A stretch of DNA of 64,000 bases from Camelus ferus (lineage: Eukaryota), in assembly GCF_009834535.1 (NCBI RefSeq), contig NC_045707.1, positions 14,446,001 through 14,510,000 on the forward strand, written 5' to 3'. Of this stretch, positions 16,131 through 52,627 are shown one piece after another. Below the pieces are notes generated by a model. It worked only from the letters and a program-made list of their open reading frames with translations. It did not search any database and was not told where the DNA came from. Each line of letters opens with the position of its first letter. Position 1 is the stretch's first letter. The translations under genes were made by a program, and so were the position numbers.

Positions 16131-19100
16131 TTTTTAATAAAAAGATCTGACCATATTTATGTATAAAGAGGGAGAAGTATGAGACTGGTTAAGTCTAATC
16201 TCCACTCCTAGACTTGTCATTTGTGACCGAGGGACTGGATTGTTTATACCCAGGTAATGGGCTGATCGGAGAACGGAGGTTGGGCTACTACAATTCAGGT
16301 GCACTTAAGCCCAGAAGGTGGGAAGTCATCCCTAAACTCCTTTTTCTCCTTCACTGTTTGGATCTACCAGCTGTTCTTGTTCCTCCTCCCATTCACACTG
16401 CACTTGGTGTTGGGTTCAGTATAAACATTTTTCCATAGGTATTAATATGCTATTTCATCCCATCTTTTAAAATAAAATCATTATCCTTTCTCATCTCTGT
16501 TGTCCTCGGCCTTATCTCTCTTTTATCTTTAAACTCATGCTCATCTCTTCATAACATACTGATTCACCAACTAGGACTGTCAAGGTACAAAGATGAATGA
16601 AGACACAGCTTCTGCTTTCAGGCAGACTGTCTAGTGGAAATAACAGATATGTAAACAGGTAACTGTGTCATAATTGTGGGATTTTTATTTCAGGCTATGT
16701 ACAAGATGCTTCTAGAGATCAGAAGATGGATACTTAATGCAATCTTGGTGTGGAACATCAGTAGAAATTTATGTAAATCAATGGACTTATTACTAAGGGA
16801 TATTCCCTGAAGCGGTGCCTCCAGGTCCTTGAGTCTTTATCATCAGTAACTGATGCAGTTTGACAGTATTGATGATCCTTTTCTTTCTCTGGTGACTCTG
16901 GTTTTGGATCCTCTAAATGTCACTCCTGGATCCAAAGACAACCCCACCTCAGTCTATTTGCAGTTTCCCCTTCCTTACTATCTCTATAAGCGATACTATT
17001 CCACAATTCTGTCCTTGGGAAGCTTCCTTTTCCGTACAGTCTTTCTTGGGATCAGTCTATTCACCACCATGGTTTTAATGACCACTTATATGGTTATGAC
17101 TCTCTAATCTGTATCTTTTGTCCAAACTAACCTCCTGACCGTAGACCCACACATCCTACCACATGTGACACATATATCTCAAGTGCAGCATATACAAAAT
17201 AGAGTATGTTTATTCGTACCTTTACATAACAAATATTAAAATACCTACTATGAACCAAGGACTCCATGAAACCTATTCTCCATTATGTCATTCTCATACA
17301 TTTTTCTCATTGATAAGAGTATAAAATTCTCATAGTCCTGTTGGTTGCGCCTGACTGGCGGCATAAATGAAATTATGAATATCACAAAAACTTACTGCTT
17401 GAAAACCATGCTTTGCCTCCAACTGTCTCATCTTCTACGTCACTTTTATTATTTTCATTTAAAATGAAGGGCTAAACCAGATCAAATGTTTTCAAACATA
17501 TTTCAGCCTTGAATATATTATTTTTTATCTTACATACAAACATAAACAAACAAAAGGACTGTTCTGGATCAGCTGGCGGCTTGAAAAGTTCTAGTGCCAC
17601 TCACATATGCCCCTCTCTTCCCAGACGACCAAGAAGGCGACACGAAATCACTACTGGTCAACCAGTAAGACGGGTCTGTCTCTCACTCACTCATGTCAAG
17701 TCCTAAATGGCCAGAAATGATAACGACTCTTACCTTATTTATACTCATGTTTTCAGATGCAATGCCAGTAAAAGATCAATATTTCCCCAACCCCACAAAA
17801 ATCATACAAAATTGGCTTTTACTACAAAAGGTAACGTTTGCTTTCTAGAATTAAAATATTTATTTGTTGACGTGCCGTCAGACAGGAAGCAGTCATCTGA
17901 GTCTGGATTTAACCTCTCTCAAAGGATGACCGTTAAAGACAATGCCTGCTTTCACCTAGGAGGACTTAAGAGGATGAGCAAGAGCACATCCCGTTCTGGA
18001 ACCTCTCACATCTCTCTCAGTGCCTGGCACTCACTCTTTACTGAAGAAATGGAGACTAAATAAATGTTTTATTGATGTTTGCATCACGTGGGCTAATTTG
18101 AGTAAATCTCCTGTGTTTGTTACATACACATAAATTGCATTAGAGTGTTGGTGACTCTTTTGCCTCAAATAAGGAATAAAAATTTTTGACTTTAGACATT
18201 TTATAATCCCATTATAGGATTTATTTAAAATAACTGATTATATACTTGAATCATTACTCTTTAACAAACTCTTTTAAAGTTTCACTATATGCTTACAATG
18301 GAAACTCTTAAAGCTCAATAATTTTCTCAAGGTAAGAGTTATCTCCTCTTGTTTAGTTGTTATAATAGACAATCCTGTTGTGAAAATAAGGAAAACTCAA
18401 ATGTACACTCAAAAAAGACCTGGAGATCAGCACTGTGTCATAGCTCAGCTCCCGTGACAATTCCTTAAGAGCATTCTCAGCTCCATGTTGCCTGAGGAAA
18501 CTGTCCATTTCTCAGCAAATAAATATTTCTTTAAATCTCTGTATTATTCTCCCTTTCTCCTTTTCTTAGCGCCACCCCAAGCCTAATAAGAATTCTCTTC
18601 TAGGTTTTAAATAATTGCCTTACTTCAGAAACTCCAAATACTGCTCTAGAGAGAATCTCTTGTGCCTCCTACTAAGTGCAACCTTCTGGTTAACTGGAAA
18701 CTGTGTACTTAGTGAGTCCAGAGCTTGGCTTCAGGCTGGGACTTCAGAGAATACAGAGCAGTGGCCCCGCTGCCCCTGGGTGCCCAACGCAGCCCACAGC
18801 TGCCTAAGAAAATCACCTCCTGATTGGTTCCATTAGAGTGATTTCCTAAAACCATGCTCTTAAAAGAGTGTTCAGAACCACAGAGGAGACAAAGAGAAGG
18901 CACATTACTGCACCTGAGATCATGCGAGAAGCTTTTCACAAAATATTTGCCTGCTGTACAAGTTTTGGGGAAACTGTCCTTGCCTTTCTATACTGGATCC
19001 TGAGTTCCAGCATGACCCCACTCTAGGCTTAGTTATTCAGGGGAATATCCTGATACTGCGGCATACCCAGTGCTTCCAGGGCTTGAGCTATTCGAACGTC

Positions 19101-23337: not shown

Positions 23338-24273
23338 ATGGCCTTGAGGAACCACAGCACCATCACTGAGTTTATTCTCACTGGGCTGTCTGATGACCCC
23401 CACATCGAGGCTCTGCTCTTTGTGCTCTTCCTGGGGATCTACCTCCTGACCATGATGGGGAACCTGATGATGCTGCTGGTGATCAGGACTGACTCCCACC
23501 TCCACACGCCCATGTACTTCTTCTTAAGTAACCTCTCATTCCTAGACCTCTGCTTCTCTTCTGTCACTGTGCCCAAGCTACTGAAGGACCTCCTGTCTGA
23601 GAAGAAAACCATCCCTGTTGAGGGCTGCCTGACTCAAGTCTTCTTTGTGTTTATCACTGCAGGGACCGAAGCCTTTCTGCTCTCAGTGATGGCCTATGAC
23701 CGCTATGTCGCCATCTGCCATCCACTGTTTTATAGCCAAGTGATGAGCAGCCAGTTCTGCATAAAGCTTGTACTGGCCTCCTGGGGTCTGGCCTCTTTCA
23801 ATTCAGTCATCATTGTGCTTTTGGCTATTAACCTGGACTTTTGTGAGGCTCAAATCATACACCACTACACATGTGAACTGCCCTCCCTCTTCCCTCTGTC
23901 TTGCTCTGATATCTCTGTCAGTATTGACATCTTGATCTGCTTAATCTTACTGCATGGTTTTGGAACGTTCCTCCCAGTCTTCTTCTCTTATGTTCGCATT
24001 GTCTCCACCATCCTGAGCATCAGCTCCACTACAGGCAGAAGCAAGGCCTTCTCCACCTGCTCCTCCCATCTCATTGCGGTGATCCTGTTCTTTGGCTCAG
24101 GTTTTGTTCGCTATCTCATGCCTTCCTCTGGTTCCTCCCTGGATTTGCTCTCCTCCTTGCAGTATAGTGCGGTCACACCCATGCTGAACCCCCTCATCTA
24201 CAGCCTCAAGAACATGGAGGTGAAGGCAGCTGTGAAAAGGGTGTGGGAGAAATACCTGCAATATTTTAGGTAG
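23338..24273 (+). CDS. OR8S1: Olfactory receptor, OR8S1-like paralog C (311 aa, intact)
   Basis: ATG-initiated ORF with NHS sequon, LHTPMYFFL, MAYDRYVAICHPL, KAFSTCSSHL and [12 protein letters not shown]. Acceptor AG at 23321-23322. Confidence 0.95.
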   Translation: MALRNHSTITEFILTGLSDDPHIEALLFVLFLGIYLLTMMGNLMMLLVIRTDSHLHTPMYFFLSNLSFLDLCFSSVTVPKLLKDLLSEKKTIPVEGCLTQVFFVFITAGTEAFLLSVMAYDRYVAICHPLFYSQVMSSQFCIKLVLASWGLASFNSVIIVLLAINLDFCEAQIIHHYTCELPSLFPLSCSDISVSIDILICLILLHGFGTFLPVFFSYVRIVSTILSISSTTGRSKAFSTCSSHLIAVILFFGSGFVRYLMPSSGSSLDLLSSLQYSAVTPMLNPLIYSLKNMEVKAAVKRVWEKYLQYFR

Positions 24274-25499
24274 TGAACAAGGACACAGAATAAGAGCAAA
24301 TGAGTTTGTGTTGCCAAGTGCTTGGACTTAAGGTAGAATTCTAGACCACTAACTTTAAGGGAGCCCTGTACCACCCTCTCCCTGGCTATCTTGAGAATGA
24401 AAAATAAAATACAAGAAATTATATCTTGTTTATGGCTGTAGATCTGTGCTCTATTTTTCCTCCTACTCTCTCACACCACCACCTCCACTTTCTTTCTGGA
24501 ACTCAGACGTTTTGCATTTCCTGAATTAATCATTTATGTATCTTGTCACTCATTTTTTGTCTTATTGATTGACTTTGGTAAAGATTTTATTCAATTTGTT
24601 GTTCTCTGTGGTATTTAATTTTATTTATTCTTTATAATGTTAAAGTTTTAAATACATATTTATAAGTTTAAACCTTAAGAACAAAATATGTTGGCACCTC
24701 CCATGAAAGATTATAGATTTATTTTACTTTAACAAACTCTCTCTTCTCTCTGCCACGTCCCTTCCTCCCTTTTTTTCTACCTTCTGTAATTTTTTTCCTG
24801 GTAATCTTCCACAAATTATTCTATTTACATTTTGTGACATTCAAATCAAGTATATTATGGATTTTAATTATAATTTCTATGGTCATTTGGGCTCATTCTA
24901 ATTTGAGCTTATTTGATATTCACTGGTATTCCTTTAATAGCACGTTCCTCCGTTTTTTCTTTTCCACAGTAGAGCATAATGGTTAGATGCATAGTCTTAC
25001 ACGGCCAGTTGCCTGTATTCCTACCCTCACTGCCTGATAAGCTTTATGACGCTGGTAAATTACTTCATTTCTCTGTCTCAGTTTCCTAGGTGTAAAATTG
25101 GGGTAATAACAGTGCCTACGTTACAGAGGTATTGTGAGAATTAAATGAAATGAACACACAGAGCCCTGGAACACGAATACTCACCACCTGAGTGTTACTC
25201 ATCAGTTATTCATGAGTTCTTTATTTCATTCTGCTTTTATTTTTTTGTAATGTGCACTTATCCAGATTTTTTTAAGAAATAGACATTATGAAATATTCTA
25301 AGACCTCGTATATCTGTGAACCTCTTTATTTTGACCTACATATGAATAAAAGGTGGCCTAATTGTAGAATTTGGGGATTCTTATCTTTTTACCTCTGTAT
25401 AGATTATACGTTGTCATATTGTAGCTAATATTCTTCGGAAGAGTAAAGGTAGCAGGACATTTTTGTCACAAACAAAAGAAAGAAAACAAAATAGTGCCA

Positions 25500-26340
25500 A
25501 GAGAGCACAAAAACTTTTTTTTAAGTTTTAAAAATGATAACATCACAGAAAAATTCAAGAAGCACATATTATAACAATAACAGAAATATAAATTCATCAA
25601 ATAAAAGGAAAAGACTTTAAGAGTGGGTCAAAAAAGTTACATGATATATATACACAATAAAGACTTCAAACAAAGTGACTCATGAAGGTTGACAGTTTTT
25701 TTAGTTGTTCAAAGATCTATTTATTTATTTATAATGGAGGTACTGGGGATTGAACCCAGGACCTCTTGCATGCTAAGCAAGCACTCAACCACTGAGCTAT
25801 ACCCTCTCCCACAAAAATATTTTAAAATAAATACAACTACAAAAATTTTTCATTTATTATGCAATATAAAAAGAGGTGAAACTGACATCAAAAACATAAA
25901 AGGGGAAAGTGAAAGGGTAGAGATTTTGCATGTAATTGAAGTTAAGTTGTTATCAGCCCAGATGAAACTCTTATGAGATGTCTAAGTTTCACAGTAACCA
26001 CAAAGCAAAAACCTACAGTATATACACAAAAGTTAAAGAGAAGGGAATCAAAACGTATCGATATAGAAAATCATCAGGTCACAAAAGAAGACAGCAAGAG
26101 AGGAGGAAAGAACAAAGAAACTACAAATAGCATTAGCAATTCCTTGCCTATCAATAATTACTCTGTATGTAAACGGATTGAATTCTCCAACAAGAGGCAT
26201 AGAGTGGCAGAATGGATTTAAAAAAAAAAAGATAAATAAGTTCTGGAGATCTAATGAACAGCAATGTGAATATAGTTAATCATAGTGTGTTACATACTTG
26301 AGATTTACTAAGAGGGTGGTTCTTAACTGTTTTCACCACA
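25500..26340 (+). mobile_element. Degenerate L1 fragments (with a SINE inserted)
   Basis: L1-like ORF2 start region (tcaataattactc..aaacggattgaattctccaa..agaggcatagagtggcagaatggatt) and a 3' UTR piece. Confidence 0.6.
25718..25810 (-). mobile_element. Camelid tRNA-derived SINE
   Basis: Reverse complement of gggagagggtatagctcagtggttgagtgcttgcttagcatgcaagaggtcctgggttcaatccccagtacctcca with an (AAAT)n tail. Confidence 0.9.
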
Positions 26341-27629
26341 GAAAAAAAAATGAGTGTGGGAAGAGACAGGAAATAGGAGAGAGAATCCCTTGCTCATCTC
26401 TGGCCCAATATATCGCTCTGTGTGTGGTATCAGTGGTTAGGGAAGAGAATTCGGTGAGCGTTTCAGAAGAGTCAGGCTTTTCTGCTTAACTCTGATTTCT
26501 TATACTAGATCCAACTCAAGTGGTTGGAATTAATTAATTTAGGTGTCAGTTCCCTCTACCCAGAAAGTATCCATCAACCCCCAAAAGGAAGGAGTACCAT
26601 AGGGAGGCTAAGATAACATGATTAGCAATGGTGAGATTTCTCCTGTGTCCACCATTCCTAAGCCTTGGACTGGCCTCTGGTCCCATTCAGATTGGTCCCT
26701 AGAGAGTACATGAAAAAAGAACAAAGAGGTGGACTTGGGCAGGAAAATGTACATAGCTGAACAAACATGTCAAAAACCTGTTCTCTCCCCGACCATTGTA
26801 AAATTATTTGGAATCCAGAAAAATGGTAACCCTTTGAAAATTCTCCCACAAAATATGGTACAACGACCACAAACTAAAAATGGCAGGAAAAACTGTGTAG
26901 GTTTAAGTAGTGAGAGGTCACCTTGAGTTTCCCTTAGCCTTAGAATGACATAGGAAGGCAGTGACTGTACTAGTGGAACAAGGATATTTGCTTCAGTGAG
27001 CGAGCCAGCGACCTGCAAAGGGTCTAACGGCTGGAAAAAAGAAGTTGAATTAGAAGATGTGCCATGGACAGTCTTGCCAGTAACCGAATGTCACGATAGA
27101 TTACCAGGGAGGGCCGTACATAAGCACCAGAGGTGGTGAGTTACATGTGGAGCAGGAGACAGCATAGGACCAAGCCAGGCCACCGTTAAAAAGTAGTCAC
27201 CTCTGGAATCCTCATATACTGTTGGTAGGAATGTCAATTCTTACAGCCACTGTGGGAAACAGTATGGAAGTTTCCCAAAAAATTAAAACTAGAACTACCG
27301 TATGACCCAGCATTTCCACTCCTGGGTATATATCCAGAAAAAAATAACCACTAATTAGAAAAGACACCTGCACCCCAATGTTCATAGCAGCATTATTTAC
27401 AATTGCCAAGACGTGGAATTAGCCTAAACTTTTTTACTAAAATAAGAGACATAGCTGCACGGTACTGATCCCTGATCAAGGTATGAAAGGTACTGGTTAA
27501 TAGTATTACTTTGTATCCATAGGTTCAAGGTGAGTTCTAAGGTAGTATATCCCAATGTGTCAGCCTTGTTTATCGATAACAATGAGATTCATGATTTGCA
27601 TCTGGTCTCAGTAAGACCTCACAGAAGCC

Positions 27630-29306
27630 TGTGCTGTTGGGGCTGGCTACTTAGCAAGAATGTGCCTATGTGATCAATAGCACATAAGATCAGTCTAGAC
27701 TCCTTTTGGGCTCCCGGGCCCCAAAGTGTCCCATGCACCCATCAGTGATTCCAGATCTGTGAAAGAAGTGTCTCCTGGCCTGGCCTTGCAAAGAGAGGAC
27801 ATTTAGAGCTCGTGCTAGGTCTCTGGATGCCTTGCTAGGGGGCAGACTTTGTCTGTAAGGTTTATCCTTACTTGATGCTATTGCTATGTTGTATCTTTTT
27901 CCTGCAATAATCATAGATTTATAAGCATTGTTATTTGGGACCCTGTGAGTATCCATTAATGATCAAACACTGTCTAACTGCTGCCATTAGTTCAGTTAGG
28001 ATCAGAAACCCATCCACCCCCACCTCATCTGACTAAGGCATTATTTAAATAGAAAAAATACGATTCTGATAAAAGGGGTGAAAATGAGTCATTGATGCCA
28101 GACGGTTGCCGTGTCACCCTTGGTTTGAAGTAGCACATGCTCTGAAATCAGTTACTGATAGTAACACCTTCTAGTGGAATCTGAAAATGATAAAACCTAA
28201 GTCTTGAAGTCTAGCAAAATGGATTAGCAGGAAACTTCAAGCACACGGCAGTTCCTCTAAAATTCAGTTCCGTGGTTTCTGCACTCAATGTTCACAAAAA
28301 TAAAGCTCAGAATCTCCTTTGGTTGAGCTTCGCTCTCTCTGGCCAGGAAACGGAGTTCCAGCTGAGGGAACCTGGGCAACCGTACCCATAACTGGCTACA
28401 CCTGCAAGACGAATTACAAATAAAAAGGTAATTCAAGTGGGACCAGCTGACAATGGAGGGCAAGAAGCCACGAAGGTAAGGGATTGCTGAGTGAAAGCAC
28501 TGAGACATTTTGTCGTGTATTAAAAGCAGCTCCCTGATGAGCCCTTGTTGAAATGGCTACTGAGAATTTTAGGCCCAGGTTCAACGTCCCTGTCCTTGAA
28601 TACTGCTGAGCAGAAGAGAACATTTACTTGCTCCTGAGGGAATGTTTGGGCTCACCTTGGCTCTTTAAATGGCTGCTACTACTGCAAGGATGCTTCATGG
28701 GGCAGCTGCTAGTTTACTAGACGGAATCAAGGGAGTGATCTGTCATAAACATTCGAGAAGTCTGAGCCCCTGATTCTGATGTGTTTCATGCACAAGTTGA
28801 TGGTTTCTAATCAAGAGAAAGTGTTACAAAATTGAGATGTGTGGACCCTGCTCGGTCTCTAGCCCAGCCAAGGTTCTCTGCCTGGGTGGGAGGTGATTCT
28901 TTTTCTGTTCGGAATTCAAGTAGACGAATAATGAAACTGAAGCTGAGATCAACACAGCACAAGCTTTATTCAGTGGCCAAAGAATGGGGAAGCAGGAACT
29001 AAGTTCACAAATCAACTTCTCGCCCACCTGGTGAGGGTGATTTAATTTTAAAGAGTAGAGATAAAGGGAGGAGGAGTGAGGCTAAGGATGGGGGGGGGCA
29101 TATGCATTAATCTCCTGGGGAAAGGGCAGGTCTTTTTCCAGGGAGTGGGTGCCACCACTTTTTTTGTATCCATATTTTGTTCCTTAATGTCCAGTCCTGG
29201 CCACTGGTAGTTGTGTCATATAATATGCTAATGTAGTAAAATCAACATATAATGAGACTCAGGGTCTGTTGGAGGTCAGATTCATCACCATCTTGGTCTC
29301 AGCTGG

Positions 29307-29343
<37 letters not shown>

Positions 29344-29680
29344 TTCCTTTCTTATCTCTGGACACTTTAACTTGAAGATTTATGTTCACTCCTGCTAAAC
29401 GTGGGGGGTTGGCAGGTTTTGAGCAAGGGCCTGGAGCAGCTCTAACAATAAAAGCACATGCTGGTAAGACCCTGCAGAGAGAGGACAAATGACTCCCTCC
29501 AGTCCTCTCTGGACTCCTTGCTGTGAGGCAGGCTTTGGCTGTGGTGTGTATCCTTATTTTAATGCTGTTGCTATGTTACATCTTTTTCATACAAATTATA
29601 GACTTATACGAATTGCCATTTTGGATCCTTTGAGTCTTTATCATTGGAAACATATCTAACTCTCCCCATTAGTACAAAAA
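27630..29680 (+). mobile_element. Degenerate ERVL-class element: two MER21-like LTR remnants and a gag relic, with a nested inverted ERV1-like LTR (~28817-29400)
   Basis: Two diverged related blocks (27.64-27.99k and 29.42-29.67k; shared ...tatcctta-tt-atgct-ttgctatgtt-atctttt). 28.46-28.62k translates to a stop-containing ERVL gag-like stretch (KQLPDEPLLKWLLRILGPG). (GT)n at 29308-29341. Confidence 0.5.
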
Positions 29681-29809
29681 AAAAACCTCTTTCCTTCAGG
29701 GAGTTAGTTTATGGGAGCTAAACAGTCATAGGAAGGGAGGAGCCAGGATATATAGGCGTTTTGCAAGAACAAACCAGGTTGTTGAACATCCAAAGATTTC
29801 TGCTAATTA

Positions 29810-30350
29810 AAGAAAAAATACATATCTCAAGTTAGTGAACTTAGCACAAGTTAGTGTTTTAGTTTTCTGCAGGTAAATACCCAGAAGTGGAGTTGCTGGA
29901 CCATATGATAGTTCTGTTTTTATATTTTTGAGAAATATGCATCCAGGTTTCCATAGTGCCTGAACCAATCTGTGTTCCCAAGGGGGTTCCCTTTTGTCCA
30001 CATCCTGGCCAATACTTGTTATCTTTTTGATAATGGCCATTTTAACATGTGGGAGGTAATATTTCGTGATTTTAATTTGCATTTCCTAATGATTAGTGAT
30101 GTTGATCATCTTTTCATGTACCTCTTGGCTATGTGTATGTTTTCTTTGAAAAATTGTCTCTTCACATCTTCTGTCCATTTTTTAATCAGGTTTTTTCATT
30201 GTTTTTTNNNNNNNNNNNNNNNNNNNNNNNNNNNNNNNNNNNNNNNNNNNNNNNNNNNNNNNNNNNNNNNNNNNNNNNNNNNNNNNNNNNNNNNNNNNNN
30301 NNNNNNNNNNNNNNNNNNNNNNNNNNNNNNNNNNNNNNNNNNNNNNNNNC
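29810..30350 (-). mobile_element. L1 ORF2 3' fragment (partly N-masked)
   Basis: Translation 29807-30082 resembles the L1 ORF2 C-terminus (MAIIKK...PLLGIY). Confidence 0.8.
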
Positions 30351-30439
30351 TGTCTTTAAGACTGGGCATAAAGTAACCTTGCCAACTACACCCCTACTGT
30401 TTAATTTTATTGTTATTGTTGCTGCATTATAGTATTGTC

Positions 30440-31830
30440 ATCTACATAAGAAAATCATTATTATCACCCTGTTACCTGATGGTATAAACATTACTTAGAA
30501 AACCCAACAAAATTAACCACTGGAACCAAAAAGCAAGTTTAGTTACAAGATCAAATTACCAAAATCAATAGAATGTATTTACACCAAAAATAACCAATTA
30601 AAAAATAAAATCAACAATAAAATACTATTAACAAAAGCAACAAAAGTTATTAAGTTTCTAGTATTTAACCTAATGTAGAATACCGAAGACTTTCTATGGA
30701 GAAAAATGTTCATATTCTAATAAAAGACATTGAAAATTCTTTGACTAAATGGAGAAACACTCCATGCTTTGGATGGGATCATTAACTACTAAAAATATTT
30801 CAGATTTTCTTCCATTTTAACCTATAACCTTAACATGAAACCAATTAAAATTCCTATTAGATTGTTTAAGAATCTCAATAAACTTACTCTAATATTCATA
30901 TGGAAGAATAAAGATTTGTGAATATCCAAGTCAATCTCTTAAAAAGAAAAGAAAGAAGGGAAGATAACTGCCTTCCTAGATATTAGGCAATATTACAAGG
31001 ACACAGTAAGAAAAAGAGTGAGGTGGACAAACAAACCAATGACAGCCCAGTGAGAAATTTACGTATGTATAGGAAATTAACATTTGCTCAAGTTGCCACA
31101 AAAATCAATGGGAAATATGTAGATTATATAAAGGGAAAGCTGATATTATATGAAGAAATTCAAATTGGATCCCTATCTAACACTACCTCTACATTTATAC
31201 AGTAAACCTAAATGTCAAAGATAAAGCTATAAAGTTAGTATAAGAAAAAGTAGAATATCTTTGTGAGTTAGTATGGCAAAGGACTTCTCAGACTAAATGT
31301 TAACAGCACAAACGATAAGGCAAAAAATAATAATAATTTTGGATACATCAATTTAAAAGGTTAGGGGCAATGAGGAACACCCCGGACAAAGATAATAGAA
31401 ACATGATAGAAGAGATTTGTAGTATGTAAAACTGACAAGAGATCAGTTCTAGACTATACAAGCAAGTCCTTCAAAACAACAAGGAAGAAAAACCCAGTAG
31501 GGAAAACAAAGTATGTGAAACAGTATATTCCTTCTATAAGAGGGAAACGCATATGACTAAAGAATGTATGAAGAGATGCTTAAACTCATTAGCAATTAAA
31601 ATAGCAAGGAGAAGGCACTTCACATCTGATAGACTACCAAATATCAGTTGGTTGGCTAGTGTTTAGTGATAGAGAAACACTCAAGCATTACAGTGAAAGC
31701 TGGTGCAACCACAGCAGTGCAGGATCAATACTTGATCAAATTATGTCTAATGTCTACTATGACTCAGGTATTGTTCAACTGGCTAAAATTCTCTAATTAC
31801 TATTATGTAAGTTCCTAAGGAAACAGGTAT
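30440..31830 (+). mobile_element. Old, highly degenerate L1 ORF2 relic
   Basis: Recognisable RT/C-terminal L1 DNA (ttagaaaacccaacaaaatt...caagatcaaattaccaaaatcaatag) with many stops. Confidence 0.65.
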
Positions 31831-31845
31831 TAAGTGTTTATTGCA

Positions 31846-34017
31846 GACAACCCCCTCCAACTTTCAACGTTCCACACTCCCCACCTAGAACTTTCTCGGC
31901 TTCCTTTTCTCCCTCCCCGCCTCCTCCCCACCAAGTATAGCATCCAACGAGTGGCCTGAGCAGGCAGCAGAGTTTTCTAAGAAATAATTTCACCAAGATG
32001 TCCAGTGATAGGCAGATGTCTGAGAATGAGAGCCCCAGACCAACAGTGGTAATTCAGATGTGGATGGTCAAGACCCAGCCACTCCAAAGCCTAAGGAATA
32101 AGCAAGAAAACTTTCTGCCTCCCAGCTGAAGAAAAGCACCAAACTCTCTAGCAAAACCACTGCTAAATTATCCACCAGTGCTCAAAGAATTCAGGAGGAG
32201 CTAGATGAAGTAAGCCTGGATTCTCCCCACCTAACTGCAATGCTGGCCAAGGGAGAACATTGATGAATCGAGATTGACTACACTTAGTCCACCACGTTCT
32301 GTATATGAAGGTTGTGTGTTTTTTTCTGTATATCACAATTTCATCTTATTGTCCACACCAAAGTTTACTTTCTGCAACAGAATCTATCACTGCAACATTA
32401 ACAGTCTGGGAGTGATCCATCTGGACATCCTTAAGGACAACTGGAGTACCTCTGACTATTTCAAAGGTTTTGCTGTCAGTTTGTTCTCTTTTGACAGACT
32501 GCAACCCTGTGGATCCTCTGCTTGGATGCAAAGCCATTCTGTATTTGATCAACAGAGCAGAAAATGACAGGATAGCTGGACAGTGGAGCAAGAGATATAC
32601 AACACAATTCATGTAATTTGTATACAATATAAAGGAGCAGAAGGCATCTTCTCACTATGCTGCAAATCTTTTTTTATTTAATTCTTATTTTTTGTTGAAG
32701 TGCAGTTGATTTACAATTTTAGTTTCATGTGTACAGTGAAGTGACTTAGTTACACATATACATAAGCATTTTTTTCAGAGTCTTTTCCTTTATAGCTCAT
32801 TACAGGAAATTGAGTATAGTTCCCTGTGCTATACAGTAGGTCCTTGCTGTTTATCTGTTTTATACATAGTAATGTGTATCTGTTAATCTCAAACTCCTAA
32901 TCTATCCCTCTCCCCGCTCTCCCCACTGGTAACAACAGTTTGTTTTCTGTGTCCATGAGTCTATTTCTGGTTTGCAAATAAAATCTGTATTTTTTTTAGA
33001 TTCCACATATACGCAGCATCATATGATATGTGTCTTTCTCTGTCTGACTTACTTCACTTAATATGATAATCCCTAAGTCCATCCATGGTGCTACAAATGG
33101 CATTATGTCACTTTTTTTATATATAGTGTATATATCACATCTTCTTTGTCCATTCATCTGTCGATGGACATTTAGGTTGTTTCCATGTCTTGGCTATTAA
33201 AAATAGTGCTTCTATGAACACCGGGGTGCAGGTATCTTTTTGAATTAGAGTTCCCTCTGGATATTCACCCAGGAGTGGGATTGCTGGATCATAGGGTAGG
33301 TCTGTTTTTAGTTTTTTAAGGAAGCTCCAGACTGTTTTCCATAGTTGCTGCACCAATTTACATTCCCACCAATAGTGTAGAAGGATTCCTTTTTCTCCAC
33401 ACCCTCTCCAGTGCTTATTATTTGTAGACTTTTTCATGATGGCCATTCTGACTGGTGTGAGGGGATACCTCATCATAGTTTTGATTTGCAGTTCTCTAAC
33501 AATTAGCAATATTGTATGCTGCAAATCTTTATAGCCTTTACAGTACCAACTTCTGTGCATATGTTACACTGCTTCTACTGTCTGCTTTTGTCCTTTGGAG
33601 ATTGGGTGACTCCCCAAAAATGTAAATGCTATCAAGAGTAGAGCTTTGTAGCTGTGGATTACTGATGTTTAAAACATCTACTTAAATGCAAGTCTTATTT
33701 CTTTGGTATATCAAAATGTATTTTATGATGTATGAAAAATTATGGTCCTGAAGTCTATGAAATATTATAGCTTATTTGAGCCTAATTCATTATCCGTATG
33801 AAGTTATAAACGTAACCATAGATGACTAGGAATTATGTAATTTATATTAAACACAGATCTATTTCTGAGTATGTAATTCATGCTTTTGCAAAAAAAAGTT
33901 TTACTTTTCACCTTTTTCAGTTTGTAATGAGATTTCCTTTTACCCCTTGTAACAGAGAACACCTGATGTATCCTCTCAAACATAATAGACATGCTTCTGA
34001 AGGCACGGAAAAAAACA
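31846..34017 (+). pseudogene. UBE2E3: UBE2E3 processed pseudogene (5'UTR, CDS 31998-~32606, 3'UTR, A-rich tail), interrupted by an L1
   Basis: Intronless match: ttcaccaagATGTCCAGTGATAGG (MSSDR), SSKTTAKLSTSAxRIQ, YEGxVFF, [23 protein letters not shown]. Frameshifts and stops present; catalytic Cys codon is CAT (32418-32420). Diverged TSD tgttt(a/c)ttgca at 31835-31845 and 34018-34028. Confidence 0.9.
32672..33514 (-). mobile_element. 5'-truncated L1 inserted in the UBE2E3 retrocopy 3'UTR
   Basis: L1 ORF2 C-terminus (33135-33560 ORF track) plus 3'UTR; perfect 16-bp TSD tatgctgcaaatcttt at 32656-32671 and 33515-33530. Confidence 0.92.
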
Positions 34018-34366
34018 TGTTTCTTGCAACATTATTTTTGGTGGTGGGAAGTTGGAGACAATTGGGGTTAGGAAATCTGTCTTAGGAAGACAAAGGCTAA
34101 GCTGTTATAGAAGAGATCCCAAAATAAAGTGAATCAAATACAATAAAAGATTATTTTTCTCTTAAGTCCAGAGATATATGGATGGTCCAGAGTGAAAGGA
34201 CCAAGCTCCTTCTATATTGTTGCTTTGTTAACTCCTAGGAATTTATTCAATCAACCACCATTCAATCCTCTTCCATGGCAAAGACTGATAATTGCTCTTC
34301 AATATCTATCCTTCCCTTGTACCTTTCAGTACTCCTGAAGTACATGGGGGTGGGAGTCAGTCCTGA

Positions 34367-36699
34367 CTTCTTTCCAAGTGGAAGACTATATCCCTCCTTA
34401 AGTGTTTCACCCAGATCTCCTTGGTGATCTTTTCTGGGGCCACTGAAGCTTGTCTCCTTTCAGTCATGACCTATGACCGGTTCCAGGCTGTGTGCCACCC
34501 ACTGTTGTATGTGGTGGCTATGAATAGGAAAGTGTGTACCAGCCTGGTGGCAGCATCCTGGGCCATTGGAATGGGGACCGGACTGGTTAACACCATCCTC
34601 CTGGCCCAGCATCACTTCTGTGGCCCCAACCTCATACGCAGTTTTGCCTGCGAGCTTCCCCCTGTGCTCCTGTTGGCCTGTTCTGACCCTTCCATTAGCA
34701 TTGCCTCCATCCTGACCACCATGGTGGTCCTGGGCCTTGGCACCCTTGTCCTGTTGCTGGGTTCCTACAACCGTATCATCATGACAGCTCTGGGCATCAA
34801 CTCTGCCATGGGTCGGAGCAAGATCTTCTCTACCTGCTCATCTCATTTTCTCGTGGTCACCATCTTTTATGGATCGGGAGTTTTCAGGTATGTCACTACT
34901 ATACCTCCTGAGTGGAAATGTAGGCATTTCTCACTCTAAAGTAGCCTCGGTCTATAGAACAGAGCATTGCAAAGTAGTAGGAAAAGAACTGTATGGAATT
35001 CAGAAGGCCTGGGTTCTAGCTCTGGCTCTGCTGTGGACTACATGTGTGAATTAGAAAAATAAAATCCATTTTCTTTCCTCAGTTGTCTAACTCTGAAAAT
35101 AAGCTTATACAAGAACTAAAGATTTTCCTACTTCCATTAACCTATGATTTGGGAGTTCTCATAAGGAAATCAGAGAGCCTTTGGTGGAGTTTTATTCAGT
35201 GCTAGACAAAAATCAAAACATATCATCCTTGAAATAGATGCCTCTTTTCCTTCCTCCTGGAAGGTGATGTTTCCAGGCTTATTTGTGCTGTAACTTTTCT
35301 TTAGGTACCTACTATACGACAGCTGCTTTATACAAACAAGCTCAATTTTAGTATGTAGCACAATTTAAGAGAAATATTATTAACCCCATTGTCAGGTAAG
35401 AAATCTCAGTTTCAGGGGTAACCAGGTACTTTCTCAAAGCTCCTGAACAAGCCAGTAATGCAGCCGTAAGAGAAACCAAATCTCACTGACTTCGCATCTC
35501 ATGCTCTTTCCTACCATGTTTCTCTCAGACATAAACAGCTCCAGCTGACGAGTCTTCACTTACCAGGAGATAGAATGGGTAACAGTCTGTGCTCTCTACT
35601 AGTGAACTAACTAGAGATGGATTTGCACAAAGTGCTCTATGTTTTTCTCACCTACTTGTTACTTGGAGAGAAGTCAGGGGTGGAAAAAGATAAGGAATGG
35701 TCCAGGAGAGCTCACTTGAGGCTGTCTTTTAACCAAGCACACCAGAACCCACAAAGAACATTCCAATGATGATGGCACCGTCTCACACACACACACACAC
35801 ACACACAGATTAATGCCTCTTTGGGAAATACTCCCAGTGACACTTAACAAGATGTTTCCAAAAATGGAATCTTATTATTTTGGATTCATGTCTCATGCTA
35901 AACACATTTTTATCTTTCATTTTATTTTCCAAGCTTGGCTTCTTTTCAAAGCCAAGGGGAAAAAAAATGCACCTAAAAGAACAAATGTCTGTTCCACTAA
36001 GTACCGTAAACATAATGTGCTGTGATTATGGGGTAATTCCCAGACCATAAACATTAGGAAAAATGATAGCATTCTTAGACTAGTGTACAGTTTTGTAAGA
36101 AACAGTCATCAATAAATGAGAACATATAGTTGTATATATAGAAAAAAGAAGAGAAAAATGTCTTCGTATGATCATCATCACTATTAAGGAAAGATGCTTT
36201 GAAAAGTATGAAGTTCCCCAGAAATGCATGAGATCATTTTTAGCTCTAATTTATCCTGCAGCACTTGATATGCTGCAGAACTAACTCCCTTTTTCCTCGG
36301 GGCAGCTCCTATAACGTTCTGCACAAGATCGCTCATATATGAAGGCGTCTACAGGCAGATATGACTGACTTCTCACCGATAATTCAGTCATTGCTAGACG
36401 CTTCTACCAGTGACGGTTGACTCAGCTCAGAGGACCCTCTTTGCAGAGTCTCCGGGATGGGATGGACCATGTCTGCCAATAGCATTGTGTCCATTGTCCT
36501 GAGCTCAGTTCACTCGTTTGTGCAATTCCCTTCAAGGTACATGACTCCAGCTTCCGGCTCAGCCCTGGAGCAAGTGCTGTCCGTGCAGTACAGTGTGGTG
36601 ACCCCGCTGCTAAACCCCCTCATCTACAGTCTGAAGAACCAGGAGGTGAAGGCAGCTCTGAGGAGAATGCTGGCCAGGAAGCCCAGGCTCACCTTCTAA
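34367..36699 (+). pseudogene. OR5BS1: OR5BS1-like olfactory receptor with coding region split by an intron; N-terminal ~84 codons missing (exons 34367-34887 and 36537-36699)
   Basis: Segment 1 encodes [29 protein letters not shown]...MTYDRF...KIFSTCSSH...YGSGVF(R) and ends at AG|GTATGT. Segment 2 starts ttcccttcAAG|G TAC and encodes [38 protein letters not shown]...TF*. The phase-2 join is in frame. Symbol from remembered similarity and position between OR8S1 and LALBA. Confidence 0.8.
35785..35808 (+). repeat. (CA)n microsatellite in the OR intron
   Basis: Perfect CA run. Confidence 0.9.
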
Positions 36700-36929
36700 G
36701 CCAGGCTCCACTGCCTCCTCATAACTGGAGGAAAAGTTGTGGGAAGAGGAGACAGAAAGAGCTATCATCGCTAAGCTATCTCAGCGTTCATTTTTTTCCA
36801 AAACAGAAGCCTTAGTTCCTCTGACACCAGTGCCCTCCTCCAGTCAAGCAAGATGGGAGAACCTCCACAGAACTGAAGGCACCATCCATGGGGGCCCAGT
36901 TACCACACAAGAAAATCCTCAAAAAATCA

Positions 36930-37910
36930 ATATGGAAGAGCTTCAAAAAACTGAAAGTTGAAACATCACATGATCCAGCAATTCCACTTCTGGAATTGAA
37001 AAGGAAATGAGAATGCTGACTCAAAAAGTTATCTGCTATGGAGGACAAACTAGTCGTTACCAGTGGGGAGAGGGAAGGGAGAGGTCCAAACTATTAGGTA
37101 TGAAATAAGCTACAAGGATATATTGTACAACACAGGGAATATAGCCAATATTTTATAATAGCTATAAAAGGAGTATAACCTTTAAAAATTGTGCATCATT
37201 GTATTGTACACCTGTAACTTAAATAATATTTTACCACAACTATACTTCAATAGGGAAAAGATATTTGTATCCCAGTGTTCATAACAGCAATATTTACAAT
37301 AGCCAAGATGTGAAAAGAACCTAAATGTTCATCAATGGATGAGTAGATAAGGNNNNNNNNNNNNNNNNNNNNNNNNNNNNNNNNNNNNNNNNNNNNNNNN
37401 NNNNNNNNNNNNNNNNNNNNNNNNNNNNNNNNNNNNNNNNNNNNNNNNNNNNNNNNNNNNNNNNNNNNNNNNNNNNNNNNNNNNNNNNNNNNNNNNNCTC
37501 AGTTATATGCAGACCCTAAAAACAAACAAGCTCATAGAAAAAAAGATCAGACATGTAGTTACCAGAGGCAAACAGTGGGAGGAGGGGGGTTTGGAGAAAG
37601 GTGGTCAAAGGTACAAATTTCCAGTGTAAGATAAGTAAGTCCTAGGGATGTAATGTACAACACCGGTGACTATAGTTAACACTGCTGTGTGCTATATGGG
37701 AAAGTTGTTAACAGAGTAAATCTCAAGGGTTCTTATCACAAGGAGAAAATTTTTTTCCTTTTTTCTTCTCTTTATGTTGTATGTATATGAGATGATGAAT
37801 ATTAGCTGAACCTACTGCAATACTCACTTCACAATATATGTAAATCAAACCATCATGCTCTACGGCTTCAATGTATACAGTAATGTGTGTCTGTCTCTCA
37901 ATAAAACTGG
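36930..37910 (+). mobile_element. L1 ORF2 C-terminus/3'UTR fragments, nested and partly N-masked
   Basis: catgatccagcaattccacttctgg; ttcataacagcaatatttacaatagccaag; 3'UTR ending ctcaataaaactggggaaaag. Confidence 0.8.
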
Positions 37911-39147
37911 GGAAAAGAAGAAAAGTAATGACTAATCCTCACAGCTTCACTGGCCATTTCTACAGCTATTGATGTTTCCTCTCTTTTTCTGTCCTTTCTA
38001 CCCCTCCCCTTCTGCCTCTCCCTCTCTCTTTTACTTTTGTCTGTGCACAAAGTGTAAATCAACCCATCTGACCACTAGCAAATATCCCCCTGCATTCTGG
38101 AGAGTCCCATCTTCGTACTAAGACTCAACTCCTCCTTTGTTCTCATCCCCAAAAAATTCCCTGGCAAGATCTATAGCTCCAGTAACAGAGAAAGAAATGA
38201 AATGAAGTAAGTGTGTCACCTCCTTTCTTTGTTCGTAACAAGAAACACCTAAAGTAGAACATAGCAAATAGTAAATCTTTAATAACTCTTTCTTGACCAA
38301 TTAAGGAGTAAATGAAGGAATGAATGATGGATCTGTCTGAAGAGTCCTTTCTCTTGCATGAATTTAGGATATAGGAGGGAGTATCCTCTCTAAAGTGCAA
38401 ATCTTGAGAGCAAATCCCCTGTCTGGCAGCATCTGTATCTCCTATGTCTAGCATGGTTCTGTCACTTAATAGGCTCTCAATCAGTGTGAAAAAATGAACA
38501 AATGATAGAGAAGAGGGAGTAAAAAAGGGAACATTTATTGTATCCAGTAAAATTCCTGCCTGCACAACAATATGGATGTCAGAGGAAAGTAGCGTGGAGG
38601 AGAGATCGGGAGAGAAAGAGAGAAAAAGGGTCCACATTTTGGGAGACCGCCTTGGGTCCTCCTCACAGAGCTTGGTCAAATGCACGCACTCTGAAGGCCC
38701 CTGCCCTGAGGCTCCTCACCACCCGCCCTAGCCTGGGACACTTAGACCCCTGCCTGGCTCCAGACTTGTTCCACGCCTAGAGGAAGGGGAGGGAGCTGGA
38801 GAAAGCAGAACAAATACTCAGCTGCCATCCCCACCTCCCTTTCAGCTCCCAAGAGAGTTCTCAGGAAGAGAACAGTAGTTTCCTGTCCTGTTTCTACCCA
38901 AAGGCCAGGCGGTCTGCCTCAGTCGAGATTACTTCCGTGCCAACTCCCTGGCTTCTATCTCTTCTTGATCCTTTGACCTTCAGGCTAAGATCCTCTTTGC
39001 AATTGTTAGTTTCCTTCAGCAAAGCCCTCTAAAAATTATGGCCTCATATATGGTACACCCACGTGTGAAATTTCCAAGATCAGGATATTTCTCTGTAGAA
39101 TGAAGTCCAGAGCTATGGAGCTGAGCAAAAATGGTCCCAGCTTTAGT

Positions 39148-40840: not shown

Positions 40841-42598
40841 TCACCACTTCTCACATTGCCACTGCTCCAGCTTCTCAGAACAGAGTGGTTTATGGGCCAA
40901 CCTGATCGTGAAAAAAGAGACAACACAAGTTGACTAACTGGATTGTAGCCCGAAATTCCATATACCTTTATTCCCAAGACGGCTGAGGTGGAAGAGTGAG
41001 TGAAAATTACAGAAAGATTGTCCTAGCCAGGTGGCACAGGACACTGAGCCACCTAATGGAGTAAGTCCATTTTTTAAACTCCAGGAAAATTGTAGGGCAG
41101 TGGTACAAAAGACTTGCTGTAGGGTCTAGGACTAAACAAGTAGAATTAGACGTCTGAGTCCAGGTAGAGGGAAGCCTGGACCTCAGTCCCCTATTAGGGA
41201 ACCCTTGTTAGGACACTTGCTAAACAGGAGTGGAGTGAATGAGGCTTGAACATTGAAAACCTGAGTCTGTTTATTGAGTTTTGTTTTGAAGACTACATTC
41301 TAGATTAAATGACCAGGAAACAGAGATGGGTGGAATGGTGCTGGAACTAAAGGGATGAGAAGAAGGAGGGGAAGGAAAAAGTAGAAAATAGAACTGGGAC
41401 TCACCAGTAGTCAATTCCTTCCTTATCCAGGATCTTCTTGGCACACATTTTGTCGTCAGTGAGGTCATCATCCAGGAACTCTGGCAGGGGTTACAGGGAA
41501 AGGAAAGAGAGATCTAAGTATTACCTAGAAAGGTAATGAGTTTCCCTCTTCTCTGGATCTAGTAGGTCTGGTCCTCTCTGAACTGGAAGCTTATGCCTGT
41601 TGCCTTTCTATACGAGAAAGCTAATACGGTAATGCCTGCCCCTTGGTAGGGGCTCCCTTCGCTTCTCTGGGGCCTCTCCAAAGGAATTATCAGTCTTATC
41701 AACTGACTTACTCTAAAAAGGTAAGGTCTCAGTTTTCAAGATTCCCAAACAACTCAGATCATCTATTCGTGAACTTCAAGGGACTGTCTGGGGATTTAGT
41801 GATAGGAAAAACTCTAACAGCCTCTTAGTCAGTATGGTCAATTCAAATCCCACAGTCACTGTGGAGTTCAAGGCAGTGAAGCCAGAAGTGTGCCTGACAC
41901 CAAAAAGATTATCCCAGGAGTAGGCTCCAGCGGGGGGGAAACCCACAAGAACAGGGTGGAAGAGGTTACTCACTGTCACAGGAGATGTCGCAGATGTTCC
42001 TTGACTGAAGGTTCTCATTGTCTCTGCACCAAATTTTATTGTTGATCTGGAAGAGTCCATATTCTCTGTTGCCATTGTTAGAAACTACAGTTTCTGTGTC
42101 ATAACCGCTCATGTGAAATATGATACAGATCCCTGAAGGAAAGATTAAAAGGAGGTATCACAAGGGTGTCCGTGCACAGCATAAAAGAGGAGCTGCATCC
42201 CCAGACAGAAAAAGGCTCCCCAGCCCATCTCCAAATATGGCAAACCACAGAACATCTTGATGAGACAGAGTTCCAAAAGGGATCAGACAATGGGAGAGAG
42301 GAAAGACAGGTGAACAAATGTAATAAAAGAGTAAACAGATAAGCAGAGAAGATAAGAGGATTATTAGGTAATTGAATTAAAAGTAGAGAAGCAAAGAGGA
42401 GGAAAAGAGGGTGGAAGAGAGAAGAGGATGAAATATGGAGCAAAGCAAGATACCAGCAAACTTACATTCAGCCAGAGTGATGCCTCCGTGGCCATTCATG
42501 TCTTTCAGCTCGTCGGACAGCTTACATTTTGTAAATTGTTTGGCCTGGATGGTAGGGAACAGGATGCCCACCAGGAGCAGAGAGACCAAGGACATCAT
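40841..42598 (-). CDS. LALBA: Alpha-lactalbumin precursor, 142 aa, 4 exons (42598-42466, 42132-41974, 41480-41405, 40901-40841)
   Basis: Coding exon lengths 133/159/76/61 nt, all introns GT-AG. Spliced protein: [142 protein letters not shown]. Eight Cys, Ca-binding loop and F31/H32/Q117/W118 intact. Confidence 0.99.
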
Positions 42599-42623
42599 TT
42601 TGGCTGCCCCCAAGATCCTGAAA

Positions 42624-49135: not shown

Positions 49136-52100
49136 TTTTTTTTTTTTAACATTTTTTATTGATTTATAATCATTTTACAATGTTCTGTCAAATTCCAGTG
49201 TTCAGCACAATTTTTCAGTTATTCATGGACATATACACACTCATTGTCACATTTTTTTCTCTGTGAGTTATCATAACATTTTGTGTATATTTCCCTGTGC
49301 TATACAGTGTAGTCTATTCTACAATTTTGAAATCCCAGTCTATCCCTTCCCACCCTCCACCCCCCTGGTAACCACAAGTCTGTATTCTCTGTCTGTGAGT
49401 CTATTTCTGTCCTTTATTTACGCTTTGTTTTTGTTTGTTTGTTTGTTTTTGTTTTTGTTTTTTAGATTCCACATATGAGCGATCTCATATGGTATTTTTC
49501 TTTCTCTCTCTGGCCTACCTCACTTAGAATGNNNNNNNNNNNNNNNNNNNNNNNNNNNNNNNNNNNNNNNNNNNNNNNNNNNNNNNNNNNNNNNNNNNNN
49601 NNNNNNNNNNNNNNNNNNNNNNNNNNNNNNNNNNNNNNNNNNNNNNNNNNNNNNNNNNNNNNNNNNNNNNNNNNNNNNNNNNNNNNNNNNNNNNNNNNNN
49701 NNNNNNNNNNNNNNNNNNNNTCCTGAAGTAGATTTCCTTCTGGATACAAGTCCAGGAGTGGGATTCCTGGGTCATATGGTAAGTCTATTCCTAGTCTTTT
49801 GAGGAATCTCCACACTGTTTTCCATAGTGGCTGCACCAAACTGCATTCCCACCAGCAGTGTAGGAGGGTTCCCCTTTCTCCACAGCCCCTCCAGCATTTG
49901 TCATTTGTGGATNNNNNNNNNNNNNNNNNNNNNNNNNNNNNNNNNNNNNNNNNNNNNNNNNNNNNNNNNNNNNNNNNNNNNNNNNNNNNNNNNNNNNNNN
50001 NNNNNNNNNNNNNNNNNNNNNNNNNNNNNNNNNNNNNNNNNNNNNNNNNNNNNNNNNNNNCTTCTGCCCATTTTTGGATTGGGTTGTTTATTTTTTTCTT
50101 ATTGAGTCGTATGAGCTGCTTATATATTCTGGAGATCAAGCCTTTGTCGGTTTCACTTGCAAAAATTTTCTCCCATTCCGTAGGTTTTCTTCTTGTTTTA
50201 TTTCTGGTTTCCTTTGCTGTGCAGAAGCTTGTAAGTTTCACTAGGTCCCATTTGTTTATTCTTGCTTTTATTTCTACTAGGAGAAAATTTTTTAAATGTA
50301 TGTCAGATAATGTTTTGCCTATGTTTTCCTCTAGGAGGTTTATTGTATCTTGTCTTATGTTTAAGTCTTTAATCCATTTTGAGTTGATTTTTGTATATGG
50401 TGTAAGGGAGTGTTCTAGCTTCATTGTTTTACATGCTGCTGTCCAGTTTTCCCAACACCATTTGCTGAAGAGACTGTCTTTATTCCAATGTATATTCTTG
50501 CCTCCTTTGTCAAAGATGAGTTGACCAAAAGTTTGTGGGTTCATTTCTGGGCTCTCTATTCTGTTCCATTGGTCTATATGTCTGTTTTGGTACCAATACC
50601 ATGCTGTCTTGATGACTGTAGCTCTATAGTATTGTCTGAAGTCTGGGAGAGTTATTCCTCCAGCCTCTTTCTTTCTCTTCAGTAATGCTTTGGCAATTCT
50701 AGGTCTTTGATGGTTCCATATGAATTTTATTATGATTTTTTCTAGTTCTGTGAAATATNNNNNNNNNNNNNNNNNNNNNNNNNNNNNNNNNNNNNNNNNN
50801 NNNNNNNNNNNNNNNNNNNNNNNNNNNNNNNNNNNNNNNNNNNNNNNNNNNNNNNNNNNNNNNNNNNNNNNNNNNNNNNNNNNNNNNNNNNNNNNNNNNN
50901 NNNNNNNNNNNNNNNNNGTGTATAATTCTTTCACCTCCTTGGTTTGATTTATTCCCAGATATTTTATTACTTTGGGTGCTATTTTAAAGGGGATTGTTTC
51001 TTTACTTTCTTCTTCTGTTGATTTATCGTTAGTGTAAAGAAATGCAACTGATTTTTGAACGTTAATTTTATAACCTGCTACCTTGCTGAATTCTTCAATC
51101 AGCTCTAGTAGCTTTCGTGTGGACCTTTTAGGGTTTTCTATATATAGTAACATGTCATCAGCATATAATGNNNNNNNNNNNNNNNNNNNNNNNNNNNNNN
51201 NNNNNNNNNNNNNNNNNNNNNNNNNNNNNNNNNNNNNNNNNNNNNNNNNNNNNNNNNNNNNNNNNNNNNNNNNNNNNNNNNNNNNNNNNNNNNNNNNNNN
51301 NNNNNNNNNNNNNNNTTTGAGTTTTTCACCGNNNNNNNNNNNNNNNNNNNNNNNNNNNNNNNNNNNNNNNNNNNNNNNNNNNNNNNNNNNNNNNNNNNNN
51401 NNNNNNNNNNNNNNNNNNNNNNNNNNNNNNNNNNNNNNNNNNNNNNNNNNNNNNNNNNNNNNNNNNNNNNNNNNNNNNNNNNNNNNNNNNNNNNNNNNNN
51501 NNNNNNNNNNNNNNNNNNNNNNNNNNNNNNNNNNNNNNNNNNNNNNNNNNNNNNNNNNNNNNNNNNNNNNNNNNNNNNNNNNNNNNNNNNNNNNNNNNNN
51601 NNNNNNNNNNNNNNNNNNNNNNNNNNNNNNNNNNNNNNNNNNNNNNNNNNNNNNNNNNNNNNNNNNNNNNNNNNNNNNNNNNNNNNNNNNNNNNNNNNNN
51701 NNNNNNNNNNNNNNNNNNNNNNNNNNNNNNNNNNNNNNNNNNNNNNNNNNNNNNNNNNNNNNNNNNNNNNNNNNNNNNNNNNNNNNNNNNNNNNNNNNNN
51801 NNNNNNNNNNNNNNNNNNNNNNNNNNNNNNNNNNNNNNNNNNCCAGTCCTGGACTTTTATTTGTAGGGAGGTTTTTAATTGCTGTTTCTATTTCCTTTCT
51901 AGTGATCGGATTGTTCAAGTGTTCAGATTCTTCTTGATTCAGTTTTGGTGGACAGTATGTTTCCAGAAACTTGTCCATCTCCTCTAGGTTATCCAGTTTG
52001 GTTCCATATAGTTTTTCATAATATTCTCGTATGATATTCTGTATTTCTATTTTGTTTGTTGTAATTTCTCCATTTTCCTTTCTTATTTTGCTAATTTGTG

Positions 52101-52627
52101 CTCTCTCTTTTTTCTTCTTTGTGAGTTTGGCCAGAGGTTTGTCGATTTTATTTACTTTTTCAAAAAAACAGCTTTTGGTTTGGTTGATTTTTTCTATGGT
52201 CTTGTTAATCTCTATTGTATTTAATTCCTCTCTGATCTTTATTATTTCCTTCCTTCTGCTGCTTTTTGGGGCTTTTTGTTCTTCTTTTTCTAATTCATTC
52301 AGGTGGTGGGTTAAATTGTTTATTTGAGATTGTTCTTCTTTTTTGAGGAAGGCCTGTATCGCTATAAACTTCCCTCTTAGCACTGCCTTTGCTATGTCCC
52401 ATAGGTTTTGAGTGGTTGTGCTTTCATTATCATTTGTCTCAAGGTATTTTTTAATTTCAGCTTTGATTTCCTCATTGATCCATTGTTTTTTCAATAACAT
52501 ATTGTTTAATCTCCATGCTTTCCTTTTTTTCTCCTTTGTTTCTCTGTTGTTGATTTCCAGTTTCATGGCATTGTGGTCAGTAAAGATGCTTGAGATAATT
52601 TCTATCTTCTTAAAATTGTTGAGGTTT
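49136..52627 (-). mobile_element. Young 5'-truncated camelid L1 (~3.5 kb) with an open ORF2 fragment
   Basis: 1056-codon frame (49462-52632) with the end of the endonuclease domain (TDHN), RT YADD and the C-terminal domain; 3'UTR and poly(A); perfect 16-bp TSD cccactgtatattctt at 49120-49135 and 52628-52643. Confidence 0.95.

Follow-up and report, generated by a model that had tools for sequence, protein, structure and literature searches.

The Camelus orthologue of the split olfactory receptor gene OR5BS1: an ancient placental intron in a copy without its first 84 codons

We focused our attention on a locus with two olfactory receptor (OR) coding segments on the forward strand of the window, that is, of the whole stretch of 64,000 nucleotides that was analysed. 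The first segment, exon A, spans positions 34367-34887 and its last letters read ...GGA GTT TTC AG; the second, exon B (36537-36699), begins with G TAC ATG and has its stop codon at 36697-36699. The gap that separates them (34888-36536) is exactly 1649 bp long and is of the GT-AG type, running from gtatgt to cccttcaag. Exon A is translated free of stops up to ...FYGSGVF, exon B reads (R)YMTPASGS...RLTF followed by the stop, and the two joined together are in frame over 227 codons plus stop, with no internal stop. The original prediction had described two OR segments 1649 bp apart, free of stops and frameshifts and joined in frame through canonical splice sites, and both its coordinates and its junction are reproduced here. 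Against the Pfam 7tm_4 profile (280 positions), exon A corresponds to positions 60-223 and exon B to positions 242-280, and the gap between positions 223 and 242 places the break between TM6 and TM7. Moreover, two details that had been pointed out previously could be read directly from the window, namely an AGGTA at both ends of the gap and a CA repeat inside it, which is a (CA)12 microsatellite at 35784-35807.

Upstream of the locus lie three complete, intronless OR8S1-like genes, all on the forward strand (585-1514, 13034-13972 with its open reading frame from 12989, and 23338-24273), which are 67-78% identical among themselves. A further OR open frame, which belongs to another subfamily and shares 37-41% identity with these genes, was observed at 61932-62900, also on the forward strand; its reading frame is listed from a GTG at 62025, and the homology begins near 61932. 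On the reverse strand, at approximately 40850-42600 (placed from 16744-18501 of the dromedary locus L001), the dromedary annotation places a 142-aa member of the lysozyme/alpha-lactalbumin family (PF00062), whose length and neighbourhood suggest alpha-lactalbumin. This arrangement would resemble the gene order of human chr12. In addition, LINE-1 ORF2-like fragments are present at 33135-33560 (reverse strand), 36890-37010 (forward strand) and 49462-52632 (reverse strand), the last of which, the long fragment at 49-52 kb, is broken by runs of N.

The identity of the split locus was established by a protein search with the open frame 34367-34936 as the query. The top matches were Camelus dromedarius proteins named 'olfactory receptor 8S1' (98-99% identity), and the next matches named OR5BS1 or 'OR8S1' came from hippo (92%), armadillo (90%) and squirrels (88%), all of approximately 311 aa. 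Overall, 311-aa proteins named OR5BS1 or 'OR8S1(-like)' were matched at 75-92% in hippo, armadillo, squirrels, lemur, horse, carnivores, bats, tenrecs and apes. Exon A shares 97.7% amino-acid identity with residues 85-261 of the dromedary protein P0002, and exon B 98% with its residues 257-311. The closest relatives are OR5BS1 orthologues (88-99%) and not members of other OR subfamilies, and dromedary OR5BS1 is only 52-55% identical to the OR8S1-like paralogues of the window. The surroundings are conserved as well, since the window is colinear with the dromedary OR5BS1 locus L001 at approximately 99% DNA identity, including the downstream 142-aa PF00062 gene, and this near but incomplete identity suggests a Camelus genome other than that of the dromedary; the OR5BS1 neighbourhood has OR8S1-like paralogues upstream and the lysozyme/alpha-lactalbumin family gene downstream. 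The locus is the Camelus orthologue of OR5BS1, a class II olfactory receptor, for which the name at NCBI is often 'OR8S1' or 'OR8S1-like'. In terms of that protein, exon A is the remnant of coding exon 1, with codons 85-257 and two bases of codon 258 (the end of EC1/TM3 through TM6); the gap is the conserved coding intron, in phase 2; and exon B is coding exon 2, from the third base of codon 258 to the stop, encoding EC3, TM7 with the NPxxY region and the C-terminus, all three on the forward strand.

We then compared the OR5BS1 loci of six mammals, namely hippo, bonobo, armadillo, lesser hedgehog tenrec, deer mouse and Przewalski horse. In all six, the annotated protein was recovered by excising one GT-AG intron of 1482-2795 bp (2138 bp in bonobo), and codons 1-257 form a single exon. 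The intron lies after two bases of codon 258, that is, in phase 2 (at codon 255 in the 308-aa deer mouse protein). The splice junction of the window is kept in these orthologues, and its site between TM6 and TM7 (after codon 257, phase 2) matches both the six mammals and the human and mouse entries listed by Barnes et al. (2020, PMC7055050). Species from each of the four placental superorders (Laurasiatheria, Euarchontoglires, Xenarthra and Afrotheria) agree in codon and phase, and none of the six orthologues is intronless. The beginning of the intron (gtatgtca...) and its end (...caattcccttcaag) are conserved among the orthologues, as is the AGGTA at both of its ends, except in deer mouse, which has AGGT only. 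Moreover, the camel intron aligns nearly end to end with those of hippo and horse (78-82%) and in large blocks with those of armadillo, bonobo and tenrec (67-76%). As the camel intron can be aligned across placentals, most of its length was already present in the placental ancestor, where it measured at least about 1.4 kb. The coding region of placental OR5BS1 is accordingly split by one intron that follows codon 257 in phase 2 and separates TM6 from TM7.

Selection on the coding region was evaluated by pairwise Nei-Gojobori comparisons among the six intact orthologues, taking the ratio of mean dN to mean dS. Codons 1-84 gave 0.25, codons 85-257 gave 0.20 and codons 259-311 (exon 2) gave 0.17, far from the value of about 1 by which the prediction could have failed; purifying selection has acted on both exons since the placental ancestor. 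In addition, camel OR5BS1 compared with that of hippo gave a dN/dS of 0.13, which indicates that the gene was constrained for most of the history of the camel lineage. The proposal of a real intron kept by selection holds in part: the intron is ancient, and it is found in placental orthologues at the same site and phase, with alignable content and a dN/dS of about 0.2, but the copy in the window is without codons 1-84.

A full OR has about 310 residues, compared with the 227 of the window copy, a shortfall that the original prediction did not mention. Hippo OR5BS1 covers positions 1-280 of the 7tm_4 profile, and positions 1-59 (TM1-TM2) are missing from the locus in the window, where the match comprises 60-223 and 242-280 only. 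A TGA at 34364-34366, in frame directly before 34367, closes the reading frame, and upstream of 34367 the homology ends. The OR5BS1 N-terminus was absent from the 64-kb window in tblastn searches with the window paralogues and with dromedary, hippo and squirrel OR5BS1; even when pushed to E = 50 within 24300-38000, these searches matched only the three complete paralogues and an inverted 'TPMYF' scrap. The explanation was found by comparison with dromedary. Window positions 26406-34331 align to 1-7920 of L001, and 34367-37350 to 10253-13237, so that the 2332 bp at L001 7921-10252 have no counterpart in the window. The missing stretch comprises the first 252 bases of the coding sequence (codons 1-84, with the start codon, N-terminus, TM1 and TM2), preceded by approximately 2.1 kb of upstream DNA. 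Between the two aligned blocks, at 34332-34366, lies a 35-bp deletion scar, which on the reverse strand is a scrap of OR5BS1 codons ~49-61 reading ...TPMYF, and which ends with the TGA mentioned above. Its reverse complement is identical to L001 10146-10183 at 29 of 30 aligned bases, with one 8-bp gap. A second, independent dromedary assembly (L008) gave the same deletion and the same inverted remnant. This genome therefore carries a complex deletion of 2.3 kb with a 35-bp inverted remnant, and because hippo, horse and others retain the N-terminal codons, the state seen in the window is the derived one.

TM3 to TM7 alone cannot encode a seven-helix receptor, and the loss of TM1-TM2 leads us to infer that the window copy is a recent unitary pseudogene. 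Neither does it conform to the criteria of Barnes et al. (PMC7055050) for a protein-coding split OR, which call for an intact ORF longer than 300 aa, the conserved initiator methionine and seven TM domains free of deletions, as it has 227 codons, no start codon and no TM1-TM2. The original prediction, which had taken the open halves as a sign of a maintained gene, does not hold on this point. The frames and splice sites are open because the loss is recent and there has been too little time for more damage, not because of current selection: across the 669 coding bases (223 codons) that were compared with dromedary, only 5 differ. One peculiarity of the window copy is an MTYDRF where orthologues have MAYDRF. 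The complex deletion removed 2332 bp, in whose place there is now a 35-bp inverted piece of the coding sequence that was lost, and what stands today, TM3 to TM7 with intact splice sites, is the leftover of a gene constrained until recently. Altogether, a Camelus OR5BS1 orthologue with an ancient placental intron, struck by a 2332-bp deletion and recently turned into a unitary pseudogene, is very probably the correct reading of the locus. For annotation, it follows that an open, spliceable OR fragment should be taken for a working gene only when the frame for all seven helices is complete.

The dromedary gene carries a lesion of its own. A 10-bp deletion at the exon 1 end is found in both dromedary assemblies (L001:10744-10790 and L008:3612-3660, homologous to 34858-34900 of the window), where the window reads GGATCGGGAGTTTTCAG/GTATGTC, the slash marking the splice site, and dromedary reads GGATCGGGTATGTC. 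The deletion takes out the conserved donor, and the leftover donor, G/GTATGT, is in a different phase; as read from the sequence, when this donor is spliced to the conserved acceptor the frame runs into a stop after two codons. No single intron yields the annotated 311-aa dromedary protein P0002 from its own assembly, which is due to this 10-bp deletion at the donor. In the other dromedary model, P0003, a cryptic acceptor further upstream is used, which inserts approximately 37 residues. It seems, from the nature of these lesions, that OR5BS1 was damaged independently, and by different events, in the dromedary lineage and in that of the window.

We considered whether the 5' truncation could be an assembly artefact or a rare allele, in which case the species would have an intact two-exon OR5BS1. 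The support for the junction was assessed by the sharing of 31-mers with Logan contigs of sequencing runs. All 55 sampled 31-mers of 34100-34700 were found in 17 DNA runs, and all four sampled words of 34305-34395, centred on the scar, in 19 DNA runs. The runs that carry junction words come from at least 14 samples, seven studies and two organisms, and are dated 2013-2019. Recurrence over 19 DNA runs and at least 14 samples indicates that the junction is not a one-off assembly error, which would not be expected to recur over independent data sets, and templated filler in inverted orientation is characteristic of genuine repair. On the other side, the support for the junction comes from this word sharing among Logan contigs, and some of the runs with junction words may be the source of the assembly itself. 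Moreover, what word sharing demonstrates is the presence of the deleted allele; an intact allele may exist beside it, and the deletion could then be polymorphic. Weighing these points, we regard an artefact or a rare allele as distinctly improbable. Separately, three runs guessed to be RNA (X18, X19 and X28) contained 40-50% of the sampled words of 34100-34700, which may reflect either transcripts of the remnant or carried-over DNA.

Another possibility is that the receptor still works, with its N-terminus, TM1 and TM2 coming from a coding exon further upstream that has escaped recognition, or from the neighbouring OR8S1-like gene through splicing, which would make it a three-exon or chimeric OR. 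The remaining splice sites and frames are intact, the sequence at 34350-34378 (ctgacttctttccaag/TGG) is acceptor-like, though it is simply coding sequence in the orthologues, and some chimeric read-through OR transcripts are known (Barnes et al. 2020, PMC7055050). Nevertheless, apart from the three complete paralogues, the nearest of which is approximately 10 kb upstream, the 64 kb hold no OR5BS1-like N-terminus; codons 1-257 are one exon in all the orthologues compared; an in-frame TGA stands immediately before 34367; and the piece of the lost codons that lies inverted at the breakpoint marks a rearrangement rather than the edge of an exon. A working receptor of this kind is very hard to credit, and a recent pseudogene remains the preferred explanation. 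Finally, it is almost certainly wrong to read the 1649-bp gap as an insertion that disrupted an intronless OR, the usual situation in OR pseudogenes, instead of as an intron: the gap does hold repeat-like DNA, begins with TG, ends with CA and is flanked by the 5-bp direct repeat AGGTA, like an insertion with target-site duplication, but a GT-AG gap with alignable content is found at the same codon in Laurasiatheria, Euarchontoglires, Xenarthra and Afrotheria, the flanking ORFs are intact with a dN/dS of about 0.2 on either side, and mouse RNA-seq has the gap spliced out (Barnes et al. 2020, PMC7055050).

For the present state of the locus, a disrupting insertion is refuted, and it survives only as a hypothesis on how the intron originated; if an insertion did stand at the start, it has served as an intron throughout the placental radiation. 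The AGGTA repeat is ancestral, and the ancestral intron, when read inside the repeat, began with TG and ended with CA. Intron gain at an AGGTA proto-splice site is possible, and the TG...CA ends together with AGGTA would agree with an insertion that duplicated 5 bp of its target. In the most specific form of this hypothesis, the intron would go back to a single pre-placental insertion, at least 1.4 kb long, which landed in an AGGTA site of an intronless OR and resembled LTR-type elements in its TG...CA ends and 5-bp target-site duplication. One AGGTA copy would then have served as donor and the other as acceptor, by which the insertion would have been spliced from the beginning and the receptor would have survived. 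We consider such a transposon-born intron, in an otherwise intronless gene family, unlikely. The camel intron has no terminal direct repeats, and in none of eight introns did the first 500 bases show similarity to the last 500; an LTR-like origin gave no terminal repeat signal in either search. The intron was also considered as a decayed tandem duplicate: tblastn and nhmmer with a CDS profile gave scattered marginal matches, on both strands and at non-matching places, and no reproducible OR-like remnant that would indicate tandem duplication was found in the introns of eight genomes. One weak resemblance to OR TM1-IC1-TM2 (RMGN...LH..Y.FL) was observed at 35572-35658 on the forward strand of the intron, with E values of 0.1-0.8 and an internal stop, and it was treated as chance because it is not repeated at matching places in other introns. 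After more than 90 million years, the signals of origin are probably gone.

As to the repeats in the intron, the two stretches that the original prediction had called MIR-like are putative MIRs: 34995-35105 (forward strand) resembles the MIR consensus, and 35375-35500 (reverse strand, apparently in opposite orientation) resembles the reverse complement of MIR. In a pairwise test, the first fragment against the reverse complement of the second reached a score that was also reached by 38 of 500 shuffles, which is not significant, and when the intron was searched against the window, the CA repeat was the sole match. Both fragments lie in intron blocks common with armadillo (intron positions 1-837 for the first fragment) and tenrec, and they are therefore old, whatever their identity.

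The split of OR5BS1 is already known, so it cannot be put forward as something new. Barnes et al. (2020, BMC Genomics 21:196, PMC7055050) described Olfr240-ps1/OR5BS1P as one gene over two exons, gave evidence of the spliced transcript in mouse, and noted that other mammals share the split; it is present in GENCODE. Their Supplementary File 3 (PMC7055050) lists a 311-aa human OR5BS1P with a 2139-bp intron after residue 257, and a 308-aa mouse Olfr240-ps1 with a 3128-bp intron after residue 254. The human locus, chr12:48559882-48562956 in the same supplement (PMC7055050), spans approximately 3 kb, and the bonobo locus 3074 bp, so the original prediction had given the extent of OR5BS1(P) correctly. 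On its discovery, the split mattered because it went against the rule that vertebrate OR coding regions are single-exon. To this our results make small additions, namely the identical codon and phase and the alignable intron in four placental superorders, the ancestral AGGTA, the camel copy as a truncated pseudogene, and the 10-bp lesion of dromedary. A literature search for other ORs split at TM6 returned nothing useful.

Set against the known systems, the camel locus is orthologous to human OR5BS1P (ENST00000328207) and mouse Olfr240-ps1 (ENSMUST00000216180) by its best matches and its neighbourhood, and the intron lies after residue 257 of the 311-aa protein, in phase 2 and with GT-AG ends, in camel as in OR5BS1P. 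The window copy differs from the OR5BS1 of Barnes et al. in being without codons 1-84 and approximately 2.1 kb of upstream DNA, and in having MTYDRF for MAYDRF. Barnes et al. (PMC7055050) counted 13 split OR genes in human and 41 in mouse. The others resemble OR5BS1 in having a coding region over two exons that is conserved across mammals, but in more than 90% of them the intron lies in the N-terminal tail or TM1, where it cuts off from a few to about 30 codons (PMC7055050), whereas that of OR5BS1 lies between TM6 and TM7. The OR8S1-like paralogues of the window share the cluster and the 7tm_4 architecture with OR5BS1, but they are complete and intronless, in contrast to the split camel locus, and they have CGY TAT where OR5BS1 has AG/G TAC, and therefore no AGGTA proto-splice site. 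Ordinary OR unitary pseudogenes formed by deletion have likewise lost TM helices in one lineage and have near-identical intact relatives in sister species; compared with these, the only unusual detail in the camel copy is the 35-bp inverted remnant at its breakpoint.
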